A stretch of 64,000 nucleotides of DNA from positions 304,550-368,549 of IMG/VR virus record IMGVR_UViG_3300028676_000003; one strand, 5' to 3'. Numbering within the stretch: the stretch's first letter is position 1; every line of letters starts with the position of its first letter. Shown piece after piece: positions 217 to 10,290 of this stretch. Made by a program: the position numbers and the translations under genes. The notes under the pieces are model-generated. The model was given only the letters and a program-made list of their open reading frames with translations. It ran no database searches and was not told the DNA's origin.

Positions 217-585
217 ATGAAAGAAGAACATAAAGTTAAATTGGTAGATATGCTTGGTGAGGAAAAAGCCAATCTAATCTTCAAGCAAGTAGAAGACCAA
301 GCAAAGTTAAATGAAATTCACGAAAAGGCTAAAAAAGATGAAGAAGCAAGAATGGTTAATGCCATGATTGATAAGGGTTATCTTATAAGTGGTGAATACT
401 ATTCGGGCCACAGGTTCCGTGGGAAGCACGTAGCAATGTGGGATGGTCAAGATAATTGTTTTAGAACAATCAATTTCAAAATGGGAAGTTTTTTTGTTGA
501 AAAGTTACCTTATTTTGGAGACGTTGCAGATACAAATCAAGATGGTTTTATACCATTTGATAGGATTGAAAAAAGAAAAATCTAG
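217..585 (+). CDS. phage hypothetical protein
   Basis: ATG 217 just after upstream stop; HVAMWDG...F motif. Confidence 0.7.
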   Translation: MKEEHKVKLVDMLGEEKANLIFKQVEDQAKLNEIHEKAKKDEEARMVNAMIDKGYLISGEYYSGHRFRGKHVAMWDGQDNCFRTINFKMGSFFVEKLPYFGDVADTNQDGFIPFDRIEKRKI

Positions 586-590
586 AAATT

Positions 591-965
591 ATGAAATATA
601 CGTGGTTAGTTAAAAGAGTTAAAGCTGTTCAAGCCGTTAGAGATTATCTAGGTGTTGGTTATATTGAAGCAGTTTCAAAATACAATGAAATAATTGAGTT
701 TTTAGATGGAACCAAAAATTTGGAGAACGAGCATAATCTACATAATTCATCATTGGGTAGTATTGCTTTTGGTTTACGATATCGAGGAATCATTTCGTTT
801 GAAACACAAGATGATGTCGAGGATAAAAAAGAACAAGAAAGACAGACGATTATTTCTCATGAAAACAAAAAAGCTAAAGAATGGTTTGATAAACAAACTG
901 AGTTTGACCAAGAAATGATTAATCGTTTAATTAGAATGAATCAAGTAGGCCCAGCAATGGGGTAA
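591..965 (+). CDS. divergent bL12(L7/L12)-CTD-like protein, paralog 1
   Basis: VKAVQAVRDYLGVGYIEA; C-terminal helix shared with next two ORFs. Confidence 0.45.
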   Translation: MKYTWLVKRVKAVQAVRDYLGVGYIEAVSKYNEIIEFLDGTKNLENEHNLHNSSLGSIAFGLRYRGIISFETQDDVEDKKEQERQTIISHENKKAKEWFDKQTEFDQEMINRLIRMNQVGPAMG

Positions 966-982
966 AAAGAAAAATAATTAGT

Positions 983-1366
983 ATGGGACCAAAAGTAGAT
1001 TTAAGAGATTTTAAATGGGTTTTAGAAAGAACAAAAGCAATTGTTGCTATTGGTAAAGAAGAAGGCATGGGTCTTACGGTTGCCAAAAACACCTATGAGA
1101 AGATAAATGCGATTGTTGCTGATGGAATTTATTCAGTAGATTCTAACACACCTTTTGAGGACAGAAATTATATTTGTTTTTTGGAAAGACTAAAATATAG
1201 GGGTGTTTTGTCATATACTGAATGGGACTATCATAGGGAAGAACAAGCAGAACGTTATCGACTTGAAGAAGAAACACATGCCAAGGCTGTTAAGTGGATG
1301 AAATCACTAAGCAAAGAGGAACAAGAAATGGTACAAACACTAATGAATGGAATGATTCTTAGATAA
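983..1366 (+). CDS. divergent bL12-CTD-like protein, paralog 2
   Basis: TKAIVAIGKEEGMGLTVAK; shared C-terminal W..L....QEM..TL motif. Confidence 0.4.
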   Translation: MGPKVDLRDFKWVLERTKAIVAIGKEEGMGLTVAKNTYEKINAIVADGIYSVDSNTPFEDRNYICFLERLKYRGVLSYTEWDYHREEQAERYRLEEETHAKAVKWMKSLSKEEQEMVQTLMNGMILR

Positions 1367-1377
1367 AAACAAAAATT

Positions 1378-1761
1378 ATGGTAGCAATATTAATAACATA
1401 CAATAAATGGCTTACAGAGTCTAAGTTATTTGTAGTAAAAGAAGTGAAGATGTTCGCAGGAATTGGACTTAAAGAGGCCAAGGATTTTGTGGACGAAATT
1501 GATAATAACATCCGTTTGGGTAAAACTATTTCTATTGGAAAAGGGAGTGAAACACACGAAATACTAAAATTCTTAAAAGAGAAAGACTTACTTTCATTTG
1601 TGGAAGCTCATAAGACTGGGCTAAAGAAAGAAAATCATCGTGTGGTTGCTAAGCGTAGCAAGGAATATGATATAGCTAGGTCTTGGTTCGATTCTTTGCA
1701 CCCAAAGAAACAAGCTATGATTCAAACGCTAATAAACGAAGAAAATGGCATTTCAGGATAA
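1378..1761 (+). CDS. ribosomal protein L7/L12 C-terminal domain-like protein, paralog 3
   Basis: KLFVVKEVKMFAGIGLKEAKDFVD matches bL12 signature KxxVIKxVRxxTGLGLKEAKDLVE. Confidence 0.7.
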   Translation: MVAILITYNKWLTESKLFVVKEVKMFAGIGLKEAKDFVDEIDNNIRLGKTISIGKGSETHEILKFLKEKDLLSFVEAHKTGLKKENHRVVAKRSKEYDIARSWFDSLHPKKQAMIQTLINEENGISG

Positions 1762-2443
1762 ATACGGAAGAACCCTACATTTTGATTTTAGTCCTGGAAC
1801 TACATCGGATGATAGAATAAATACAGAATGGAGAGAGCAGGTACAGAAGTTTCCTAAGCTGATTCATACTGAGAAACTAGACGGAGAAAACTCTTGTCTA
1901 TCTCAATATGGTGTCTTTGCTAGGTCACATGCGGCACCTACACTACATCCATGGGCTAACCACTTGAAAGAGAAGCAATCAGTAATTCAACATGACCTAA
2001 AAAGCATGGATTTTGAAATATTTGGTGAAAACCTATATGCTTTACACTCAATCATTTACCCTGAACTTACAGCACATTTCTATGTGTTTGGAATTAGGGT
2101 CCTTGATAAGTGGCTTTCATGGGAAGAAACCAAGCAATGGGCTGGATTCTTTGATTTTCAAGTGGTTCCCGAATTGGGAATTCAAGATACAACTGAACCT
2201 GAACTAATAAAATCAAGGGTACTAGAATTAGGTAGTCAGCCAAGCGTATTTGGTTCACAACAAAATAATACTGACCCGCTTATTGATTGTACACGTGAAG
2301 GTATTGTAAGTAGGAATATAGACGAATACACAGTTGAAGGTTTCAAAGAGAATATCTTCAAATATGTGAGAAAAGACCACGTTCAAACGGACGTTCATTG
2401 GAGTAAAACAATAACAAGAGCAAGACTAATACACGAATACTAA
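1745..2443 (+). CDS. ATP-dependent RNA ligase (Rnl2-like)
   Basis: motif I TEKLDGEN, IFGENLY, FYVFGI, REGIV, FKYVR. Confidence 0.85.
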   Translation: MAFQDKYGRTLHFDFSPGTTSDDRINTEWREQVQKFPKLIHTEKLDGENSCLSQYGVFARSHAAPTLHPWANHLKEKQSVIQHDLKSMDFEIFGENLYALHSIIYPELTAHFYVFGIRVLDKWLSWEETKQWAGFFDFQVVPELGIQDTTEPELIKSRVLELGSQPSVFGSQQNNTDPLIDCTREGIVSRNIDEYTVEGFKENIFKYVRKDHVQTDVHWSKTITRARLIHEY

Positions 2444-2628
2444 TGTTAGAAATATTTTTAACCATTTATATGGTATTGATTTGTGGAATACTTTTAAATA
2501 TCTTAGCTGGAACAGCATTTGATAGTTATTATGATAGAAGCAAAAAAGGTTTTTTATTAGGATGTTCATTGCTAATAATAAGTTGGTTTATACATGGATT
2601 ATTAATTCTATGGGGACATGGGAATTAG
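2443..2628 (+). CDS. small membrane protein
   Basis: two hydrophobic segments; TAATG coupling. Confidence 0.65.
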   Translation: MLEIFLTIYMVLICGILLNILAGTAFDSYYDRSKKGFLLGCSLLIISWFIHGLLILWGHGN

Positions 2629-2851
2629 AAATCTAATTGGAGCGATTGCCTCAGCCCATCAACGAAATAAGACCAAACCAAGAGGTAAAGAGGAAAAAGA
2701 GGTTTTAGAGCCTGACCATACTGGTTTTGTCCCTTATACAAAAGGATGGAAAGAGAAGCACTTAGAATGGGCCAATGCTGGCTTATGTGGTGAGTGTGGT
2801 GAACCATCGGGTGATGAATTAGGTATTTGTAATGAATGCCGTTGGAGTTAA
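2618..2851 (+). CDS. small Zn-ribbon protein
   Basis: CGEC...CNEC. Confidence 0.6.
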   Translation: MGIRNLIGAIASAHQRNKTKPRGKEEKEVLEPDHTGFVPYTKGWKEKHLEWANAGLCGECGEPSGDELGICNECRWS

Positions 2852-2854
2852 ATC

Positions 2855-3181
2855 ATGGGAAAGAAAGAAATTCGTAGAGACTTCAGAAATGACGTTTTTA
2901 CAAGAGATAAAAATACCTGTAAAGTATGTGGTGAAGTCCGAGAGTTAAGTCTTTTGGATGCTCACCACATTACTGATAGAGGGGAGATGCCTAATGGTGG
3001 TTACGTCAAAGAAAATGGTATTACCGTTTGTAAGGAAGACTGCCATTTGAAGGTTGAATGGTTCCATATCACTGAAGGTAAAGAATGGGAAGAAGGACTT
3101 CACCCTGACGACTTGTATAAGATGATTGGTTCATCTAAGGAGTTGGCTATTCAAAAAAGTGAGAGATTGCTTGCGAGATAA
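2855..3181 (+). CDS. HNH endonuclease
   Basis: RDKNTCKVC...DAHHI...NGITVC..CH. Confidence 0.8.
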   Translation: MGKKEIRRDFRNDVFTRDKNTCKVCGEVRELSLLDAHHITDRGEMPNGGYVKENGITVCKEDCHLKVEWFHITEGKEWEEGLHPDDLYKMIGSSKELAIQKSERLLAR

Positions 3182-3193
3182 CTTAATAATTTG

Positions 3194-3201
3194 TACCTTT
3201 G
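3194..3201 (+). promoter_or_regulatory. Bacteroidota -7 promoter box TACCTTTG
   Basis: TTGC ~21 nt upstream; ATG 4 nt downstream. Confidence 0.7.
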
Positions 3202-3205
3202 TAAT

Positions 3206-3922
3206 ATGGAATTTAAAAAGAAAGAAATAATCGGAATGATTCACTTGGCTGGCCCTGATGTGGTTGAAAAAGCTATGGAAGAAATCAAAATATATGAGGA
3301 AGAAGGTCTTTCAGGTATCATCATTGAAAATTATCACGGTAATACCAGTGAAGTTTTGAAGGTATTATCTCGATTAGAGCATCAACCAACTAGTCTTAGT
3401 GTAGGTATTAATATTCTACCTAATGAGTTCGAATTTGCTTTTAAGCTTTGTGATGATTATGAGTTTATTGATTTCATTCAATTAGACTATATCGCTGGTG
3501 CTTATGCTATTGGAGACAAGGTAATTAAGCTTGATGCAGATAAATTTATTGAGTTATCGATGAACCACAGCAAGGTTGAGGTTTACGGTGGCGTTTGGCC
3601 TAAATATTATAAACCATTGAAAGATAGTGTTCTTAGCGTTGATTTATTTGATGCTGTTTTCCTTGGAAGTGCCGTTGTTGTAACTGGTGAAGGTACTGGT
3701 TATGAAACACCTCTTGATAAGGTGAAAGAATTTGCTACCCTAATTGATGGTAAGGCTCCGCTAATTGTTGGAGCAGGACTTACAGCTGAAAATGTTAAAG
3801 AGCAACTTGAATTTGCTCAAGGTGGTATTGTTGGTAGTGCTTTTAAACCTAACGGTCGAACTCAGCAAATGGTTGATAGAGACTTGGTTAAAGCTTTTAT
3901 GGACGAAGTAAAAAAACTATGA
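3206..3922 (+). CDS. btpA: BtpA/SgcQ-family TIM-barrel protein
   Basis: IIGMIHL, GIIIENY, VGINILPN, AVVVTGEGTG, GGIVGSAFK; true start ATG 3206 (track's TTG lies inside the promoter). Confidence 0.8.
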   Translation: MEFKKKEIIGMIHLAGPDVVEKAMEEIKIYEEEGLSGIIIENYHGNTSEVLKVLSRLEHQPTSLSVGINILPNEFEFAFKLCDDYEFIDFIQLDYIAGAYAIGDKVIKLDADKFIELSMNHSKVEVYGGVWPKYYKPLKDSVLSVDLFDAVFLGSAVVVTGEGTGYETPLDKVKEFATLIDGKAPLIVGAGLTAENVKEQLEFAQGGIVGSAFKPNGRTQQMVDRDLVKAFMDEVKKL

Positions 3923-3923
3923 T

Positions 3924-4424
3924 ATGGAATGTAAAACTATTAAGTTCGTTAAAAAAAATGGTGAAGCAGTAATAGTAAATAAAGTAAAATATCCTAATTT
4001 TTTTGAAGCTGAAGCTCAAGCAAATGGAATAAATACACAATCTAAGGTATTCACTAAAAGAATGGCTTATCATTGTAGTATTTGTGGTCATTATCACGTT
4101 GGAACTTCGATTGAAGCACTAAAGAAACCGAAACCCAAAGATAAAAAAATAAAGCTTATTGGTGGTATCAAGATGCCGAAGGTAGTTGGTAGTATTGATT
4201 TACGATTGTTTAATAATCCACAACCAAGAGTCAAAAAAGTGATGAATAGCGTTTATGTTAATCGAAAAATTTATCATTATATGATAAAGATTAAGATTGT
4301 TGAAGTAATCTGCCCTGATGGAAAGAAAAAAAGACCTAAAATTGATAAAATTCTTGGACAACAAAAAAAGCTTAACCAAAAAAAGATAATTGAATACATC
4401 TCTAAAGAGATAGCAAAAAAATAG
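3924..4424 (+). CDS. Zn-finger protein (AYxCxxCxxYHVG), paralog of 5550
   Basis: MAYHCSICGHYHVG; KVVGSIDL. Confidence 0.6.
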   Translation: MECKTIKFVKKNGEAVIVNKVKYPNFFEAEAQANGINTQSKVFTKRMAYHCSICGHYHVGTSIEALKKPKPKDKKIKLIGGIKMPKVVGSIDLRLFNNPQPRVKKVMNSVYVNRKIYHYMIKIKIVEVICPDGKKKRPKIDKILGQQKKLNQKKIIEYISKEIAKK

Positions 4425-4429
4425 AAATC

Positions 4430-5542
4430 ATGTGGAAGTTTAAGTATTACGATATAGAGAAGGGTCCTGATTGGACAGCAATTGAAAGGAATTGCGAGTG
4501 GTTTCGTGATATGAAAGACGTTCCACAAGACAAGATATGGCATGCCGAAGGTGATGTTCAAATCCATACAAAAATGGTTTGTGAAGCACTTATCCAATTG
4601 TCTGAATTTCAAGAACTTAGTGAAGAAAAGAAACACATTATGTTTACAGGTGCGCTTATGCACGACATAGAGAAACGTTCTACAACTACAACTGAGTTCA
4701 AGAATGACAGAGAGTGTATTATTGCTCCTAAGCATGCTGAAAGAGGTGAGAAAACAGCAAGAGAAATTCTTTATATGGATTTTGATTGTCCTTATCATTC
4801 TAGAGAACAAATCTGTAAGATTGTTAAGTGGCACGGGAAGCCTCTACACGATGCATCTAATAAGACACTTGCTAGACTAGCAACACAAGTTCAATTACCA
4901 TTTCTAGCAATGATTGCAAAGGCCGATATTCTTGGCCGTATTTGTACTGATGCTGAAGAACACTTGGAAAGAATTGAATTTTTCCAAATGCAAGCAGAAG
5001 ACATTGGTTGTTGGGGTCGTACAATGTACTTTCAAAATCAATTGATTGAATATGAAGCTTTAAAAACGGGTAATTTATATTCACATCGTTTTGATGATAC
5101 GAAGTTTGAGGTAATGATGATGTCCGCAATCCCAGGTTCAGGCAAAGACCACTACGTTAAGAATAACCTTCAAGGGTGGCCTGTAATCAGTCTTGACGAT
5201 ATTAGAGCTGAGCTTAAGGTTAAGCCTTTAGATAAAAAGGGTAACGGACAAGTGATTCAACTAGCTAAAAAGAGAGCTAAGGAACTAATGGCTAAGCATA
5301 CAAATTTTGTATGGAATGCCACAAATATAACTCAACAAATGAGAGGTCAGTTGATTGAGTTATTTGAAGAATATGGTGGAAAGGTAACAATTGTTTATAT
5401 TGAGGTCCCTTATAAGACTCTTATCAAGCAAAATAACGATAGAGAAGCGATAGTTCCTCAAAGTGTTATTGAAAAGATGATTAGAAAATGGGAACCACCT
5501 ATTCGTGAAGAAGCATATAGAATATTAACTTTTACAAATTAA
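4430..5542 (+). CDS. HD-domain + P-loop polynucleotide kinase (AAA_33-like) fusion
   Basis: HAEGDVQIHT, LMHDIEK, Walker A AIPGSGKD, WNATN. Confidence 0.8.
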   Translation: MWKFKYYDIEKGPDWTAIERNCEWFRDMKDVPQDKIWHAEGDVQIHTKMVCEALIQLSEFQELSEEKKHIMFTGALMHDIEKRSTTTTEFKNDRECIIAPKHAERGEKTAREILYMDFDCPYHSREQICKIVKWHGKPLHDASNKTLARLATQVQLPFLAMIAKADILGRICTDAEEHLERIEFFQMQAEDIGCWGRTMYFQNQLIEYEALKTGNLYSHRFDDTKFEVMMMSAIPGSGKDHYVKNNLQGWPVISLDDIRAELKVKPLDKKGNGQVIQLAKKRAKELMAKHTNFVWNATNITQQMRGQLIELFEEYGGKVTIVYIEVPYKTLIKQNNDREAIVPQSVIEKMIRKWEPPIREEAYRILTFTN

Positions 5543-5549
5543 ATATGAT

Positions 5550-5825
5550 ATGGAATGCACAACCAAACACATCAACCCTGTTAGTGGGTTAGAAGAAGAT
5601 AAACCTAAGAAACCGTTCAACACAAATGAACAAGCAATTTCACATGCTAAGTATGTAAATGGACTACCTGACAGAACCTACAAGGTTGTTGCCTATAAGT
5701 GCCCTGTTTGCTTCAAGTTTCATGTTGGACGTAATGGTAAACCACTCACCAAGAAGTATGTGGATAAAATAACAAAACCAAAGACATTCCAAGGGTTTAA
5801 AATTATTGGAAAAATTGAATTATGA
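5550..5825 (+). CDS. Zn-finger protein, paralog of 3924
   Basis: VAYKCPVCFKFHVG; KIIGKIEL. Confidence 0.6.
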   Translation: MECTTKHINPVSGLEEDKPKKPFNTNEQAISHAKYVNGLPDRTYKVVAYKCPVCFKFHVGRNGKPLTKKYVDKITKPKTFQGFKIIGKIEL

Positions 5826-6247
5826 TTGAAAAATTTAGAATTATATTTGTAACAGTTCTGTTAGTAGGACTATTTGCATATTCTATAAATGCTATACATT
5901 TCTTTATAAAGAATGACACATTTATTCATTATCAAGATTGTGGTAAGGTAGTAGGAAGTTCAAGTGAAGACAGACCAGTAAAACATGGAAGTGAAACTGA
6001 GTTTTATTTATTGATGCAATACGAAAAACAAGGCTTCAAAACTCAAGATGTTGGCGTTACAACCTATTACCAATACAAGGATGCTATCGGTAAGAAGCTA
6101 TGTTTTGAACAATCAGAACCAAATCCAGCGATATCAACGATATCCGACCACATTAAACATTTCCTAGGAGTTTTCTTTATAGTTGTTTACGTTATAGTTT
6201 TTTTGGTTATATTTATAGGATGGTGCGCAGGCGACCTGAAAATATAA
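5822..6247 (+). CDS. membrane protein with N- and C-terminal TM segments
   Basis: hydrophobic termini. Confidence 0.65.
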   Translation: MIEKFRIIFVTVLLVGLFAYSINAIHFFIKNDTFIHYQDCGKVVGSSSEDRPVKHGSETEFYLLMQYEKQGFKTQDVGVTTYYQYKDAIGKKLCFEQSEPNPAISTISDHIKHFLGVFFIVVYVIVFLVIFIGWCAGDLKI

Positions 6248-6272
6248 TAACGAAAAGATTTATAACATATGA

Positions 6273-6845
6273 ATGAATATTAAACAAAGACTTAGAGAGG
6301 TTTTATTAGAAGCCGAAAAAAAGGACCACAAACGAGAGTATGGTTGCCTTATGGTTTTCTTAGATGTTGACAAGAAAGCTTGGAAAGAATTACAAGATAT
6401 GATTGACAAGGACGACTTGTATACAGAAAAAGACGATGATGGTTATGGTCTAGAAGATAAACCACACGTTACAGTACTTTACGGACTTCATGGAGAGATT
6501 GAAGATAAGGAATTAGAGGTTGAAATCAATAAGATTACAGAACCTAAGATTTCTTTTAAGAATATTTCAACATTTGAGGCCGATAAGTATGATGTATTGA
6601 AATTTGATGTATCGAGTAGCGACTTGGTTAAACTTAACAAGAAATTCAAGGAATTTCCACATACTAGTACGTTCCCTAATTATCATCCTCATTGTACAAT
6701 TGCTTATCTGAAAAAGGGTGTTGCTGAAAAGTACATCAAAAAGGCTAAGGATTTGGTTAAGATGGATATGGAACCTGAAAAGGTTGTTTATTCTAAGGTT
6801 GATGGAACTGAGAAGAATTATAAAATAAATAAAAAAGAGGCTTAA
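6273..6845 (+). CDS. 2H phosphoesterase (T4 gp57B/Acb1-like)
   Basis: two HxT motifs (PHVTVLYG, PHCTIAY) and YGCLM N-terminal motif. Confidence 0.8.
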   Translation: MNIKQRLREVLLEAEKKDHKREYGCLMVFLDVDKKAWKELQDMIDKDDLYTEKDDDGYGLEDKPHVTVLYGLHGEIEDKELEVEINKITEPKISFKNISTFEADKYDVLKFDVSSSDLVKLNKKFKEFPHTSTFPNYHPHCTIAYLKKGVAEKYIKKAKDLVKMDMEPEKVVYSKVDGTEKNYKINKKEA

Positions 6846-7397: not shown

Positions 7398-7588
7398 TGG
7401 ACGAATCAAGAAAGAAAGTGATTGCAACCATAAATTCATGCACGCAATTACAACACTTAGGAGCAACTAGAAAATTGGTATTCTTATACCTGAACAAATT
7501 TAATGGTCCTGCTTACGACAACAACTACAATGCGCTTATGCACATTTACGAAATTAAAAAACGAGAAATAATCAAAACAAATGGATAG
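7397..7588 (+). CDS. hypothetical protein
   Basis: TAATG-coupled ORF. Confidence 0.65.
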   Translation: MDESRKKVIATINSCTQLQHLGATRKLVFLYLNKFNGPAYDNNYNALMHIYEIKKREIIKTNG

Positions 7589-8399
7589 AACTATAAAAAA
7601 GATACAGAAGAATATATTTTACATGCTATTAGCAAACCCTGCTATATATTTGAAAGTATTGATTTATAGAACCGTTGGGATTGGTATTTTTACACTTTTC
7701 ATGGGGCTGACTATAAATTGGCTTGATTGGAACATATATACAATCCCAGCGTCTATGCATAGTCTTATCGGACTAGTAATTGGTTTACTCTTGGTTTTTA
7801 GAACCAACACAGCCTATGACCGTTGGTGGGAAGGTAGAAAGATGATTAGTGGGTTATGTCACGAAATTGACATGGTTTCAGCAAGACTATATGCTATGTC
7901 AGGCACTGAAAACGCTTATTCAATAGAAGGTTTCAGGTCTTCAACAGAGATGTTCTTAAAGAAGCTTCGAGATTTCCTTACAATCAACGAAGATGGTGAA
8001 AGTTCAAGTCAGTTTCATGCTTCGCAGAAGACAACGATAAAGAACGCTATGCTTGCCCTTAATGGAATGAATCAAGATAACATTCATGTTGCTGGCCTTA
8101 TGGCTTCGCTTAACAAGATGGTTGAATATTCAAATGCCTTGGAGAGAATCAAAAATACTCCAATTCCTTTATCTTATGTGTTTCACATCAAGATTAGTAT
8201 TTTCATATACTTGTTGTCATTACCGTTCGGTATTTTCCACGATTTAGAGCTATTTGCGGTACCATTGGTTATGTTGATATATTATATCATTGCGGGTGTA
8301 GAAATCATCAGTAACGAGATTGAAAATCCGTTTGCTGACGACCCGAATGACTTACCAACAAAAAAATTATTTGGCGTAATGCTTAAAACACTAGGATAA
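7581..8399 (+). CDS. bestrophin-family (YneE-like) anion channel
   Basis: LLVFRTNTAYDRWWEGR, ERIKNTPIP, EIENPF..DPNDLP; 4 TM segments. Confidence 0.9.
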   Translation: MDRTIKKIQKNIFYMLLANPAIYLKVLIYRTVGIGIFTLFMGLTINWLDWNIYTIPASMHSLIGLVIGLLLVFRTNTAYDRWWEGRKMISGLCHEIDMVSARLYAMSGTENAYSIEGFRSSTEMFLKKLRDFLTINEDGESSSQFHASQKTTIKNAMLALNGMNQDNIHVAGLMASLNKMVEYSNALERIKNTPIPLSYVFHIKISIFIYLLSLPFGIFHDLELFAVPLVMLIYYIIAGVEIISNEIENPFADDPNDLPTKKLFGVMLKTLG

Positions 8400-8584: not shown

Positions 8585-8756
8585 AGAAAAAGTAACAATC
8601 AATCTTCGAGAAAAGTACAAAAAAGGCAGTGTTATCAATAAAAAGGAAATACTTCGTATGGTTACTGAGAACATTGATAAAATAACTATCGAATTGCGTG
8701 AAAGAACCGCATATTCAGATAACACAGAAGAAGTAGTAATTTCAATTAGATACTAA
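8577..8756 (+). CDS. hypothetical protein
   Basis: ATG 8577; coupled to folA. Confidence 0.6.
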   Translation: MAKEKVTINLREKYKKGSVINKKEILRMVTENIDKITIELRERTAYSDNTEEVVISIRY

Positions 8757-9271
8757 TGATAAAAATTATCGTGGCGGCATCGTCAAACCTAGTAATCGGT
8801 AAAGAGAATGATTTACCGTGGAATCTTCCAACAGATATGAAACACTTTAAAACGGTTACATCGGGCCATACGGTCCTAATGGGTCGTAAGTGTTGGGAAA
8901 GCATTCCAGCAAAATATCGTCCATTACCTAACAGAAAAAACATCGTTCTTACACGAAATACAGAGTATGTTGCTGAGGGAGCGCAAGTTGCGCATAACTT
9001 ACAAGATGTTCTTAAAAAGTATAAGAATTCAGATGAAACCCTTTTTGTTATTGGTGGAGCAGAAATCTATGATGAGTCATTTGAAATGGCTGATTATATG
9101 TTCTTCACACACATCTTCAATGAAGTGGATGGAGATATCAAATTAAATAAGTTAGATTTCCAAGATTGGGAAATGACAGATATAGACGATTTAGTAGAGG
9201 AAAACGGACTAAAATTTAGAATTGAATTTTATCAGAAAAAAAATCTGAAATCCGCTTGCAACCAAAGATAA
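8756..9271 (+). CDS. folA: dihydrofolate reductase
   Basis: VIGKENDLPWNLPTDMKHFK, VLMGRKCWESI, RPLPNRKNIVLT, FVIGGAEIY. Confidence 0.95.
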   Translation: MIKIIVAASSNLVIGKENDLPWNLPTDMKHFKTVTSGHTVLMGRKCWESIPAKYRPLPNRKNIVLTRNTEYVAEGAQVAHNLQDVLKKYKNSDETLFVIGGAEIYDESFEMADYMFFTHIFNEVDGDIKLNKLDFQDWEMTDIDDLVEENGLKFRIEFYQKKNLKSACNQR

Positions 9272-9882: not shown

Positions 9883-10290
9883 ATGGGCTTAAAAGAGCAA
9901 CTTAATGCTGATTTTATTACAGCATTTAAACAAGGAGAAGCGGGAAGAGCAAAAAAGAACTTTTTAGGACTTCTTAAAGGAGAAATTCAAAACGAAGAAA
10001 CAAGAAACGGTGCAATAGTCGATTCTGATGAATTGGTTATGAGCGTTCTTAAAAGAATGGAAAAGTCTCTTAAGTTAGCTGATACTGCTCAAAATACAGA
10101 AGAATTAGGTTTCTTAGGCGCATACTTGCCAACAATGAAAACTGAAGCTGAATTGACTGAGATTATCTTGGAATACAAAGCTAGTGGTATAACAAACGTT
10201 GGTCAACTTATGGGTAAAATCAACAAAGATTACGAATGGGTGATTGATAACACAATTGTTATTAGAATTGCCCCACAACTTTTAAAATAA
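9883..10290 (+). CDS. GatB/YqeY-domain protein
   Basis: LKEQLNAD...A.K, LKGEIQNEE, E...L..YLP. Confidence 0.75.
   Translation: MGLKEQLNADFITAFKQGEAGRAKKNFLGLLKGEIQNEETRNGAIVDSDELVMSVLKRMEKSLKLADTAQNTEELGFLGAYLPTMKTEAELTEIILEYKASGITNVGQLMGKINKDYEWVIDNTIVIRIAPQLLK

Follow-up and report, generated by a model that had tools for sequence, protein, structure and literature searches.

Small phage proteins that join a bL12 C-terminal-like domain to a shared helical hairpin form an old tandem triplet beside RNA-repair-like genes

The window analyzed here is a stretch of 64,000 nucleotides, the last 64 kb (304,550-368,549) of the 368,549-bp virus record IMGVR_UViG_3300028676_000003 (G000; source contig Ga0302167_10000008; CheckV completeness 100). 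Near its start, three consecutive open reading frames (ORFs), called ORFs 591, 983 and 1378 after the position of their first nucleotide, code for small proteins related to the C-terminal domain (CTD) found in the ribosomal stalk protein bL12 (L7/L12, rplL). From architecture, homology and duplication history alone, we are highly confident that the three belong to an undescribed family of small non-ribosomal proteins, some 115-131 residues long. It is strongly supported that each member has an N-terminal α/β domain derived from the bL12 CTD, followed by a charged linker and a family-specific helical hairpin. Equally well supported is that the family grew by old tandem duplication into at least three sub-families, referred to below as the 591, 983 and 1378 types, and that the phage of the window keeps one of each.

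Pairwise BLASTP shows the three proteins to be paralogs over their full length (E 3e-11, 5e-6 and 1e-4; 25-27% identity). They have in common a C-terminal helix region in which A, W, Q, M and L positions do not vary. A first-pass annotation of this DNA had described a tandem triplet of diverging bL12-CTD-like proteins, and the reading frames, the full-length paralogy and a Pfam match all bear it out. It had also given the pattern of the shared C-terminal helix as A..W...L....Q.MI..L; the element is indeed common to the three proteins and had not been described before, except that the L of A..W...L is a Q in ORF 591.

The relationship to bL12 is most direct for ORF 1378, whose Pfam match to Ribosomal_L12 (PF00542; E 9e-8, 32.8 bits, profile positions 10-42 of 67) exceeds the gathering threshold of 25.9 bits. 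By that score the match is well beyond chance, and it is the sole Ribosomal_L12 match in the entire phage genome. The bL12 motif quoted earlier for this ORF was found at residues 16-39. ORFs 983 and 591 gave no direct PF00542 match in Pfam at E up to 1. We used hhalign to align the sub-families with one another and with genuine bL12 CTDs, the latter taken from multi-repeat proteins recovered in a profile search and from 69 real rplL genes of bacterial genomes. The 1378 group aligned to bL12 CTDs at 96.4% (E 1e-9), and the N-domain of the whole family aligned to the 69 real bL12 CTDs at 94.9% (E 4.6e-8). Taken directly, the 983 group reached 53% and the 591 group 72% over 23 columns, both in the correct register. 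With the 1378 group, both aligned at 98.4%; the alignment spans more than 100 columns for the 983 group and 109 for the 591 group (E 6.8e-15). We would, then, tie the 983 and 591 groups to the bL12 CTD transitively, through the 1378 group.

What these proteins share with ribosomal bL12 is the homologous β-α-α-β-α-β domain with its α4-turn-α5 motif. Unlike bL12, the family has neither an N-terminal domain (NTD) for dimerization and uL10 binding nor an Ala/Pro-rich hinge; the CTD-like domain begins at residue 1, with nothing of the kind ahead of it, and is followed by an unrelated hairpin. Helix α5 is also longer in the models (residues 31-47), and the genes are phage-encoded and present as tandem, diverged copies. 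None of the three ORFs matched Ribosomal_L12_N in Pfam at E up to 1. Against TIGR00855, the rplL equivalog model of NCBIfam, ORF 1378 scored 27.8 bits compared with a cut-off of 84.4, and ORFs 591 and 983 gave no match. The PHROG matches of all three were weak (E 0.003 or worse) and to groups of unknown function. Because the bL12 NTD is absent and the score lies far under the TIGR00855 cut-off, we conclude that the three proteins are not ribosomal bL12.

AlphaFold2 models were built for ORF 1378 on a 10-sequence alignment and for ORF 983 on a 12-sequence alignment, with a mean predicted local distance difference test (pLDDT) score of 83 and 90, respectively. In the ORF 1378 model, strands are predicted at residues 3-11, 50-54 and 72-78 and helices at 16-27, 31-47, 58-68, 87-106 and 109-122, with a low-confidence linker at residues 81-93. 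The ORF 983 model has strands at residues 5-12, 49-52 and 76-82 and helices at 16-27, 31-47, 58-72, 83-108 and 111-124. Both are thus predicted to form β1-α4-α5-β2-α6-β3, the topology of the bL12 CTD, and then a helical hairpin. Foldseek against the PDB returned a bL12 CTD (7pao_W) as the best match of ORF 1378, with a probability of 0.99 and a template-modeling (TM) score of 0.59, normalized to the target. With VIA-align, residues 1-80 of ORF 1378 matched ClpS and bL12 CTDs alike, at Z 4.3-5.4; identity over the structural alignments was 24-31% to bL12 CTDs and 7-10% to ClpS. For ORF 983, ClpS and the bL12 CTD were also the top PDB matches (Z 3.2-4.5), and a fold search of the ESM Atlas found an L7/L12-CTD cluster (TM 0.54) amid generic α/β matches. 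ClpS is of the same fold class and its Z scores equal or slightly exceed those of bL12, but it shows no sequence similarity to the family and lacks the GLGLKEAKD-type motif of α4/α5, and none of the three ORFs matched its Pfam profile (PF02617) at E up to 1. Because the Z scores are modest for a domain of 75 residues and ClpS scores as well, the assignment to bL12 rests on sequence; the modeled folds support the homology and would not establish it without the sequence evidence. The bL12-CTD fold expected of the predicted structures was recovered for ORFs 1378 and 983, for which bL12 CTDs and ClpS are the best matches. As for ORF 591, its likeness to the bL12 CTD holds as homology, through the alignment to the 1378 group, and the fold would be incomplete: in the alignment, this protein and its whole sub-family (11 of 11) begin just before helix α4 and so are without strand β1.

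The hairpin is the best-conserved part of the family protein. In an alignment of 30 sequences, the positions that are invariant after the initiator Met both lie within it (A100 and W103 of ORF 1378). The hairpin of ORF 1378 had no match in Pfam, PHROG or the Atlas; the Atlas look-alikes of this hairpin and of ORF 591 were generic helical or unrelated proteins, with low-confidence models, and the two-domain architecture was unmatched in the Atlas fold search with the ORF 983 model. That the hairpin might be a relocated bL12 NTD, making the family a domain-swapped bL12, was considered and rejected by sequence (hhalign 1.8% against 69 genuine bL12 NTDs). Co-folding of full-length ORFs 983 and 1378 with their sub-family alignments, as a test of whether the hairpin mediates assembly, scored 0.22 against a mark of 0.32, a value that speaks neither for nor against binding. 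In most members a short hydrophobic tail extends past the last helix, and 14 of the 30, a count uncorrected for relatedness, end in glycine (...AG, ...CG, ...MG or ...SG), including ORF 591 (951-962) and ORF 1378 (1747-1758). The tail may be a signal for docking or for processing.

When 1.8 billion representative proteins were searched with a profile, 598 matched at E < 1e-3. Among the best 150 of these, about 25 proteins of 114-139 residues match the profile from end to end, hairpin included; the others carry repeats, either of the bL12 CTD or of its α4-α5 hairpin alone. The architecture is common to at least 25 sequence clusters. Every member recovered is from a metagenomic contig, and the longer of these contigs resemble related large phages. 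Neither tblastn with ORFs 983 and 1378 nor megablast with the region found anything in 50,697 deposited phage genomes, and scans of viral and metagenome contigs recovered only the source contig and one near-identical contig of 274 kb (L005). The nearest deposited relative, reached through the HD-kinase gene described below, is a 462-kb uncultured phage (LR756500.1) without a full-length family member. At 115,456-115,620 on its minus strand, an 84-residue ORF matches the N-domain of the family marginally (E 0.006) and that domain only; it may be a stand-alone bL12-CTD-like gene that has no hairpin. The window DNA is present in peat metagenome runs; no RNA runs containing it turned up in the sequencing-run search. 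Contigs of other peat samples match the stretch exactly, bridging the junctions between ORFs 983 and 1378 and between ORF 1378 and the following gene, with no deletion or copy-number joints in any of them.

Across the related contigs the array has one to three copies: three in the window (with none elsewhere in the genome) and in L005, two in L002, L006, L007, L010 and L011, and one in L003, L004, L009 and L093. In a maximum-likelihood tree the three copies of the window fall into three separate clades, with support of 96/96 for the 1378 type, 96/96 for the 591 type and 85/85 for the 983 type, and each is nearest to a protein of another contig and not to its tandem neighbor. Because of this separation, we conclude that the triplet goes back to old duplications that have been maintained, and is not the product of recent decay. 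The array had been called partly degenerate; this should not be taken to mean decay, as the genes are intact and the sub-family of each copy has orthologs in other phages. The ratio of nonsynonymous to synonymous substitution rates (dN/dS) between close orthologs is 0.09-0.15 for the 1378 type, which by this measure is under purifying selection. The single 983 pair available gave 0.27; a 591 pair gave 0.54, but is too diverged to be informative.

The sub-families differ on the face formed by helices α4 and α5. In Escherichia coli bL12, V66, I69, K70, R73, L80 and E82 are reportedly the residues that contact the translational GTPases (Kothe 2004, Diaconu 2005, Helgstrand 2007). The factors that bL12 engages through α4/α5 are EF-Tu, EF-G, IF2 and RF3. 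E. coli numbering and contact positions were mapped onto the family in the hhalign registers. In the 1378 type the contact residues are identical or conservatively replaced in nine of nine members, and the equivalents of K65, K81 and K84 are likewise identical or conservatively replaced. Position by position, eight or nine of the nine retain K70, G79, L80 and K84 and have K for R73, K or R for K81 and E or D for E82, although overall identity between members is only 38-48%. The 983 type has a hydrophobic residue in place of K70, K, N or G in place of R73, and for the most part V or A in place of E82; the 591 type mostly has N for R73, has I, F or Y for L80, and has lost K84. The core positions V68, I69, V72, G79 and A83 are kept in all three types. 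These patterns speak for a binding surface that is conserved in the 1378 type and, in its canonical form, lost from the other two. The first-pass annotation had suggested copies tuned to different translation factors, for which we find no support: replacement of the contact residues in the 983 and 591 types looks like loss of the surface and not like its retuning. To speak of a GTPase mimic seems plausible for the 1378-type copy only.

Viral bL12 domains as such are already known. Mizuno et al. (2019; Nat Commun 10:752, PMC6375957) found that they keep the factor-contact residues, that they occur alone or embedded in other proteins and in varied genomic contexts, and proposed that they offer interfaces for translation factors; in cultured phages they were seen only in genomes below 80 kb, as single domains or as insertions in proteins of up to 724 residues. 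ORF 1378 resembles these in being a phage product with a significant Ribosomal_L12 match and retained contact residues. The window differs in its genome of 368 kb, in the fixed arrangement of a CTD-like domain and a hairpin, and in having three old sub-families, found in arrays of one to three copies, two of which are without the contact face. We consider the following to be new: the CTD-first architecture with its novel conserved hairpin, the maintenance in tandem of three old sub-families of which two are devoid of the canonical face, and a location next to an RNA-repair-like block, in a jumbo phage rich in tRNAs.

We propose that the 1378 type is most likely an off-stalk mimic of the bL12 CTD that would bind a natural ligand of that domain, the first candidates being EF-Tu, EF-G, IF2 or RF3. 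It would have no canonical seat on uL10, because the bL12 NTD is absent. The hairpin could be the common element by which the proteins anchor to, or assemble with, a partner. The 983 and 591 types would probably share this anchor and present a different, non-canonical binding surface, their charged contacts having been lost and the fold core kept. As a complete chain, from a hairpin-anchored mimic to paralogs with other surfaces, the proposal is a tentative one that may well be wrong in part. Should the 1378 type prove to bind translational GTPases, or toxins that depend on the stalk, away from the ribosome, it would reveal how factor recruitment is manipulated or protected by large phages. 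Otherwise, the bL12 CTD motif would be a general interaction module, which would temper talk of viral ribosomal proteins in metagenomic surveys. Viral ribosomal-protein domains are known, and for the role of the bL12-type ones the family offers a small, clean and testable case, in a jumbo phage whose tRNAs and RNA-repair-like genes represent a heavy investment in translation. The natural paralogs, with the same fold and hairpin but no canonical surface, are built-in controls for the 1378 type.

Several observations weigh against an off-stalk mimic. The contact of bL12 with the factors is weak and normally relies on several ribosome-held copies, so that the effect of a free monomer is hard to predict. 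The structural resemblance is loose, with Z scores of 3-5 at a root-mean-square deviation of about 4 Å and ClpS level with bL12. The α4/α5 motif is also kept in proteins with four to seven near-perfect bL12 CTD repeats (P0011 and P0017), the N-termini of which, read by eye, resemble signals for secretion or for lipoproteins. Should this be correct, the bL12 CTD is used away from the translation machinery, in these cases apparently outside the cytoplasm, and conservation of the motif would not by itself prove factor binding. The neighborhood, finally, is known from related, syntenic contigs, which makes a functional link to the adjacent genes suggestive only, and the 591-type gene of one contig (P0021 in L009) lies in a different context, with no RNA ligase gene within 5 kb.

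The repeat proteins bear on a more general role, in which the L12/ClpS fold would be a scaffold unrelated to translation, a protein-protein or multimerizing module whose motif merely stabilizes the fold. The apparent secretion or lipoprotein signals at the start of the many-repeat proteins fit such a role, as does the fact that two of the three copies of the window have lost the factor-contact residues but are still maintained as conserved sub-families. Kaur, Burroughs, Iyer and Aravind (2020; eLife 9:e52696, PMC7159879) reported insertions of L12/ClpS, which they treat as one domain type and describe as a multimerizing module, in vWA-MoxR conflict systems of Bacteroidetes. Compared by description only, those cases resemble the present one in the recruitment of the domain into proteins of biological conflict, and differ in that the domain is inserted in large vWA proteins of cellular defense and not in small phage proteins. 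The exposed charged positions of the 1378 type are difficult to reconcile with a purely structural motif: the equivalents of K70, R73, K81, E82 and K84 are invariant at 38-48% overall identity, and because of this we favor a conserved binding surface over fold stability alone. We consider a generic scaffold unlikely. P0011, P0012 and P0017 are metagenomic proteins with four to seven complete, near-canonical bL12 CTDs separated by Ser-rich or Pro-rich linkers, and P0020, P0023 and P0052 repeat the α4-α5 hairpin alone. Like the family described here, they are non-ribosomal and have multiplied the domain; unlike it, the repeats lie within one polypeptide, whereas here they are separate genes, each with its own hairpin.

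The three genes are closely packed, with 17 nt between ORFs 591 and 983 and 11 nt between ORFs 983 and 1378 (Table 1). ORF 591 starts 5 nt past the end of the preceding gene and, as read from the sequence, the 3' end of ORF 1378 overlaps the start of the RNA ligase gene by 17 nt. In the first 14 kb of the window nearly all the genes are tightly packed on the plus strand, and the ORFs read well under code 11. The leaders (566-590, 966-982 and 1367-1377) are all A-rich and contain no Shine-Dalgarno motif, and the GC content is low, at about 34%. Both features fit a host among the Bacteroidota, which do not rely on Shine-Dalgarno pairing, and do not establish it. In consensus scans, promoter-like sites were fewer than in shuffled sequences and no terminator was found within the triplet; both results fit co-transcription and are otherwise uninformative.

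Table 1. Features of the array and of its surroundings, in window coordinates
Feature	Position	Strand	Basis and remarks
Copy 1, 591 type, 124 residues	591-965	+	Eroded bL12-CTD-like domain without strand β1, then C-terminal hairpin (predicted from sequence)
Copy 2, 983 type, 127 residues	983-1366	+	bL12-CTD fold retained, GTPase-contact residues largely replaced, then hairpin
Copy 3, 1378 type, 127 residues	1378-1761	+	Canonical bL12-CTD-like domain and hairpin
Helix α4-turn-helix α5 motif of ORF 1378 (residues 16-39)	1423-1494	+	Equivalent to E. coli bL12 K65-E88; profile registers
Hairpin of ORF 1378 (residues 87-122; family-invariant A100 and W103)	1636-1743	+	AlphaFold2 model, alignment
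Hairpin of ORF 983 (residues 83-124)	1229-1354	+	AlphaFold2 model, alignment
Conserved helix region of ORF 591 (about residues 88-116; A95 and W98)	852-938	+	Secondary structure assigned by homology
Protein of 122 residues, function unknown	217-585	+	From an internal Met of ORF 175-585; orthologs upstream of array
RNA ligase (PF09414), 232 residues	1745-2443	+	Pfam E 1e-25
HNH protein	2855-3181		Part of downstream block
BtpA-family protein	3191-3922		Part of downstream block; no PHROG match
HD phosphohydrolase fused to P-loop (polynucleotide-kinase-like) protein	4430-5542	+	Pfam HD and AAA_33
2H phosphoesterase (2'-5' RNA ligase superfamily, Acb1-like)	6273-6845	+	PF13563 E 2.5e-10; PF23474 Acb1 E 7e-7

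Upstream of the array lies a gene for a protein with no Pfam or NCBIfam match; it has orthologs, at 61-80% identity, upstream of the array in six related contigs. We asked whether it could be a fourth, eroded copy and rejected this, as hhalign aligned it to the family at about 1%. Downstream, the ligase has RNA_ligase as its only domain match, and the HD-P-loop fusion falls in a polynucleotide kinase PHROG, with weak NCBIfam matches to Pnkp and PSTK. The 2H phosphoesterase gene is also found in L002 and L003. By its domain matches, the block 1745-6845 appears RNA-repair-like and counter-defense-like, the Acb1 match being to an anti-CBASS family. In related contigs the family is again surrounded by this block and by the upstream 122-residue protein. 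The RNA ligase gene has a family member immediately upstream, or one gene away, in six contigs (G000, L002, L003, L004, L006 and L093), and the copy most often kept there is of the 1378 type; in L003 the coordinates of the two genes overlap as in the window, and in L004 and L006 unrelated genes are inserted between them.

With its counter-defense flavor (RNA ligase, kinase-like repair genes, the Acb1-like phosphoesterase), this neighborhood is one reason to think of an anti-defense decoy, a free mimic that soaks up immune effectors or toxins docking on the stalk and so shields phage translation. Effectors that depend on the stalk do exist, among them Cami1-type RNases captured by the stalk and stalk-dependent N-glycosidases. 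PMC12179292 names Cami1 as an interaction mediated by L12, a ribosome-inactivating protein dependent on the bL12 stalk is described in PMC12737465, and the bL12 chain of PDB entry 8phj ("cA4-bound Cami1 in complex with 70S ribosome") aligns to the ORF 1378 model. The faithfully kept bL12 surface of the 1378 type also suits a decoy, but the 983 and 591 types do not mimic that surface and would make poor ones. We judge a decoy to be distinctly unlikely, and it overlaps the off-stalk mimic proposed above, since both need a bound ligand of the bL12 CTD.

The same neighborhood could instead point to an adaptor, with the hairpin binding the adjacent RNA ligase or kinase and the head bringing the enzyme to EF-Tu-bound tRNA or to the ribosome. 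The adjacency in six contigs, the overlap of the two genes and the lack of any further domain in the ligase all agree with such a role. However, synteny among related contigs may be inherited rather than functional, and the intervening genes of L004 and L006 and the isolated P0021 gene speak against a tight partnership. We give an adaptor little chance.

The off-stalk mimic could be extended to a function for the array as a whole. The tandem copies might assemble through their shared hairpin into a soluble phage "mini-stalk" displaying different bL12-like heads. Its targets would be translation GTPases or EF-Tu-tRNA complexes of the host, which it would capture, or immune nucleases dependent on the stalk, which it would intercept, and this capture would be coupled to what the phage itself has for maintaining translation, its roughly 62 tRNAs and the adjacent RNA ligase, kinase and 2H phosphoesterase. 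We regard this extension as a long shot; if true, it would be a new viral route for seizing or shielding factor recruitment without touching the ribosome.

Very improbable, in our view, is a genuine replacement of the stalk, in which the proteins would take the position of bL12 in host ribosomes and reprogram the recruitment of factors. In its favor, the uL10-binding NTD of bL12 likewise has the shape of a helical hairpin. Peptides of a viral bL12-domain protein have also been found in ribosome preparations, although in the same paper ribosomes could not be purified by means of a tagged viral bL12 (PMC6375957). Against replacement stand the reversed order of the domains, the lack of a Ribosomal_L12_N match, the failure of the hairpin to align with the bL12 NTD and the TIGR00855 score far below cut-off. 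A ClpS-like adaptor, whose N-domain would deliver N-degron substrates to ClpAP, is hardly credible: ClpS is the top or tied structural match (Z 5.4 for ORF 1378 and 4.5 for ORF 983), but its sequence identity to ORF 1378 is far below that of bL12 CTDs, Pfam detects no ClpS domain, and any bL12 CTD should match ClpS, because the two are described as one domain type (PMC7159879).

The phage has about 62 tRNA genes according to ARAGORN; those listed lie at 224,978-301,345 of the virus record, ending 3.8 kb upstream of the triplet, and none is within the window. One at 228,804-228,879 has a CUA anticodon (amber-suppressor-like, called "Pyl"), and several others have odd anticodon loops. Suppressor tRNAs can accompany stop-codon recoding in large phages. 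On either side of the HD-kinase gene, 3924-4424 (166 residues) and 5550-5825 (91 residues) code for proteins that both start with MEC and have a CxxC...HVG motif in common; by appearance they are paralogs of the zinc-ribbon type, with no Pfam match where scanned. Past the block come genes for a bestrophin-like channel (7581-8399), a dihydrofolate reductase (8756-9271) and a YqeY-like protein (9883-10290), the last followed by a metallophosphatase, an AAA ATPase and a NUDIX protein.

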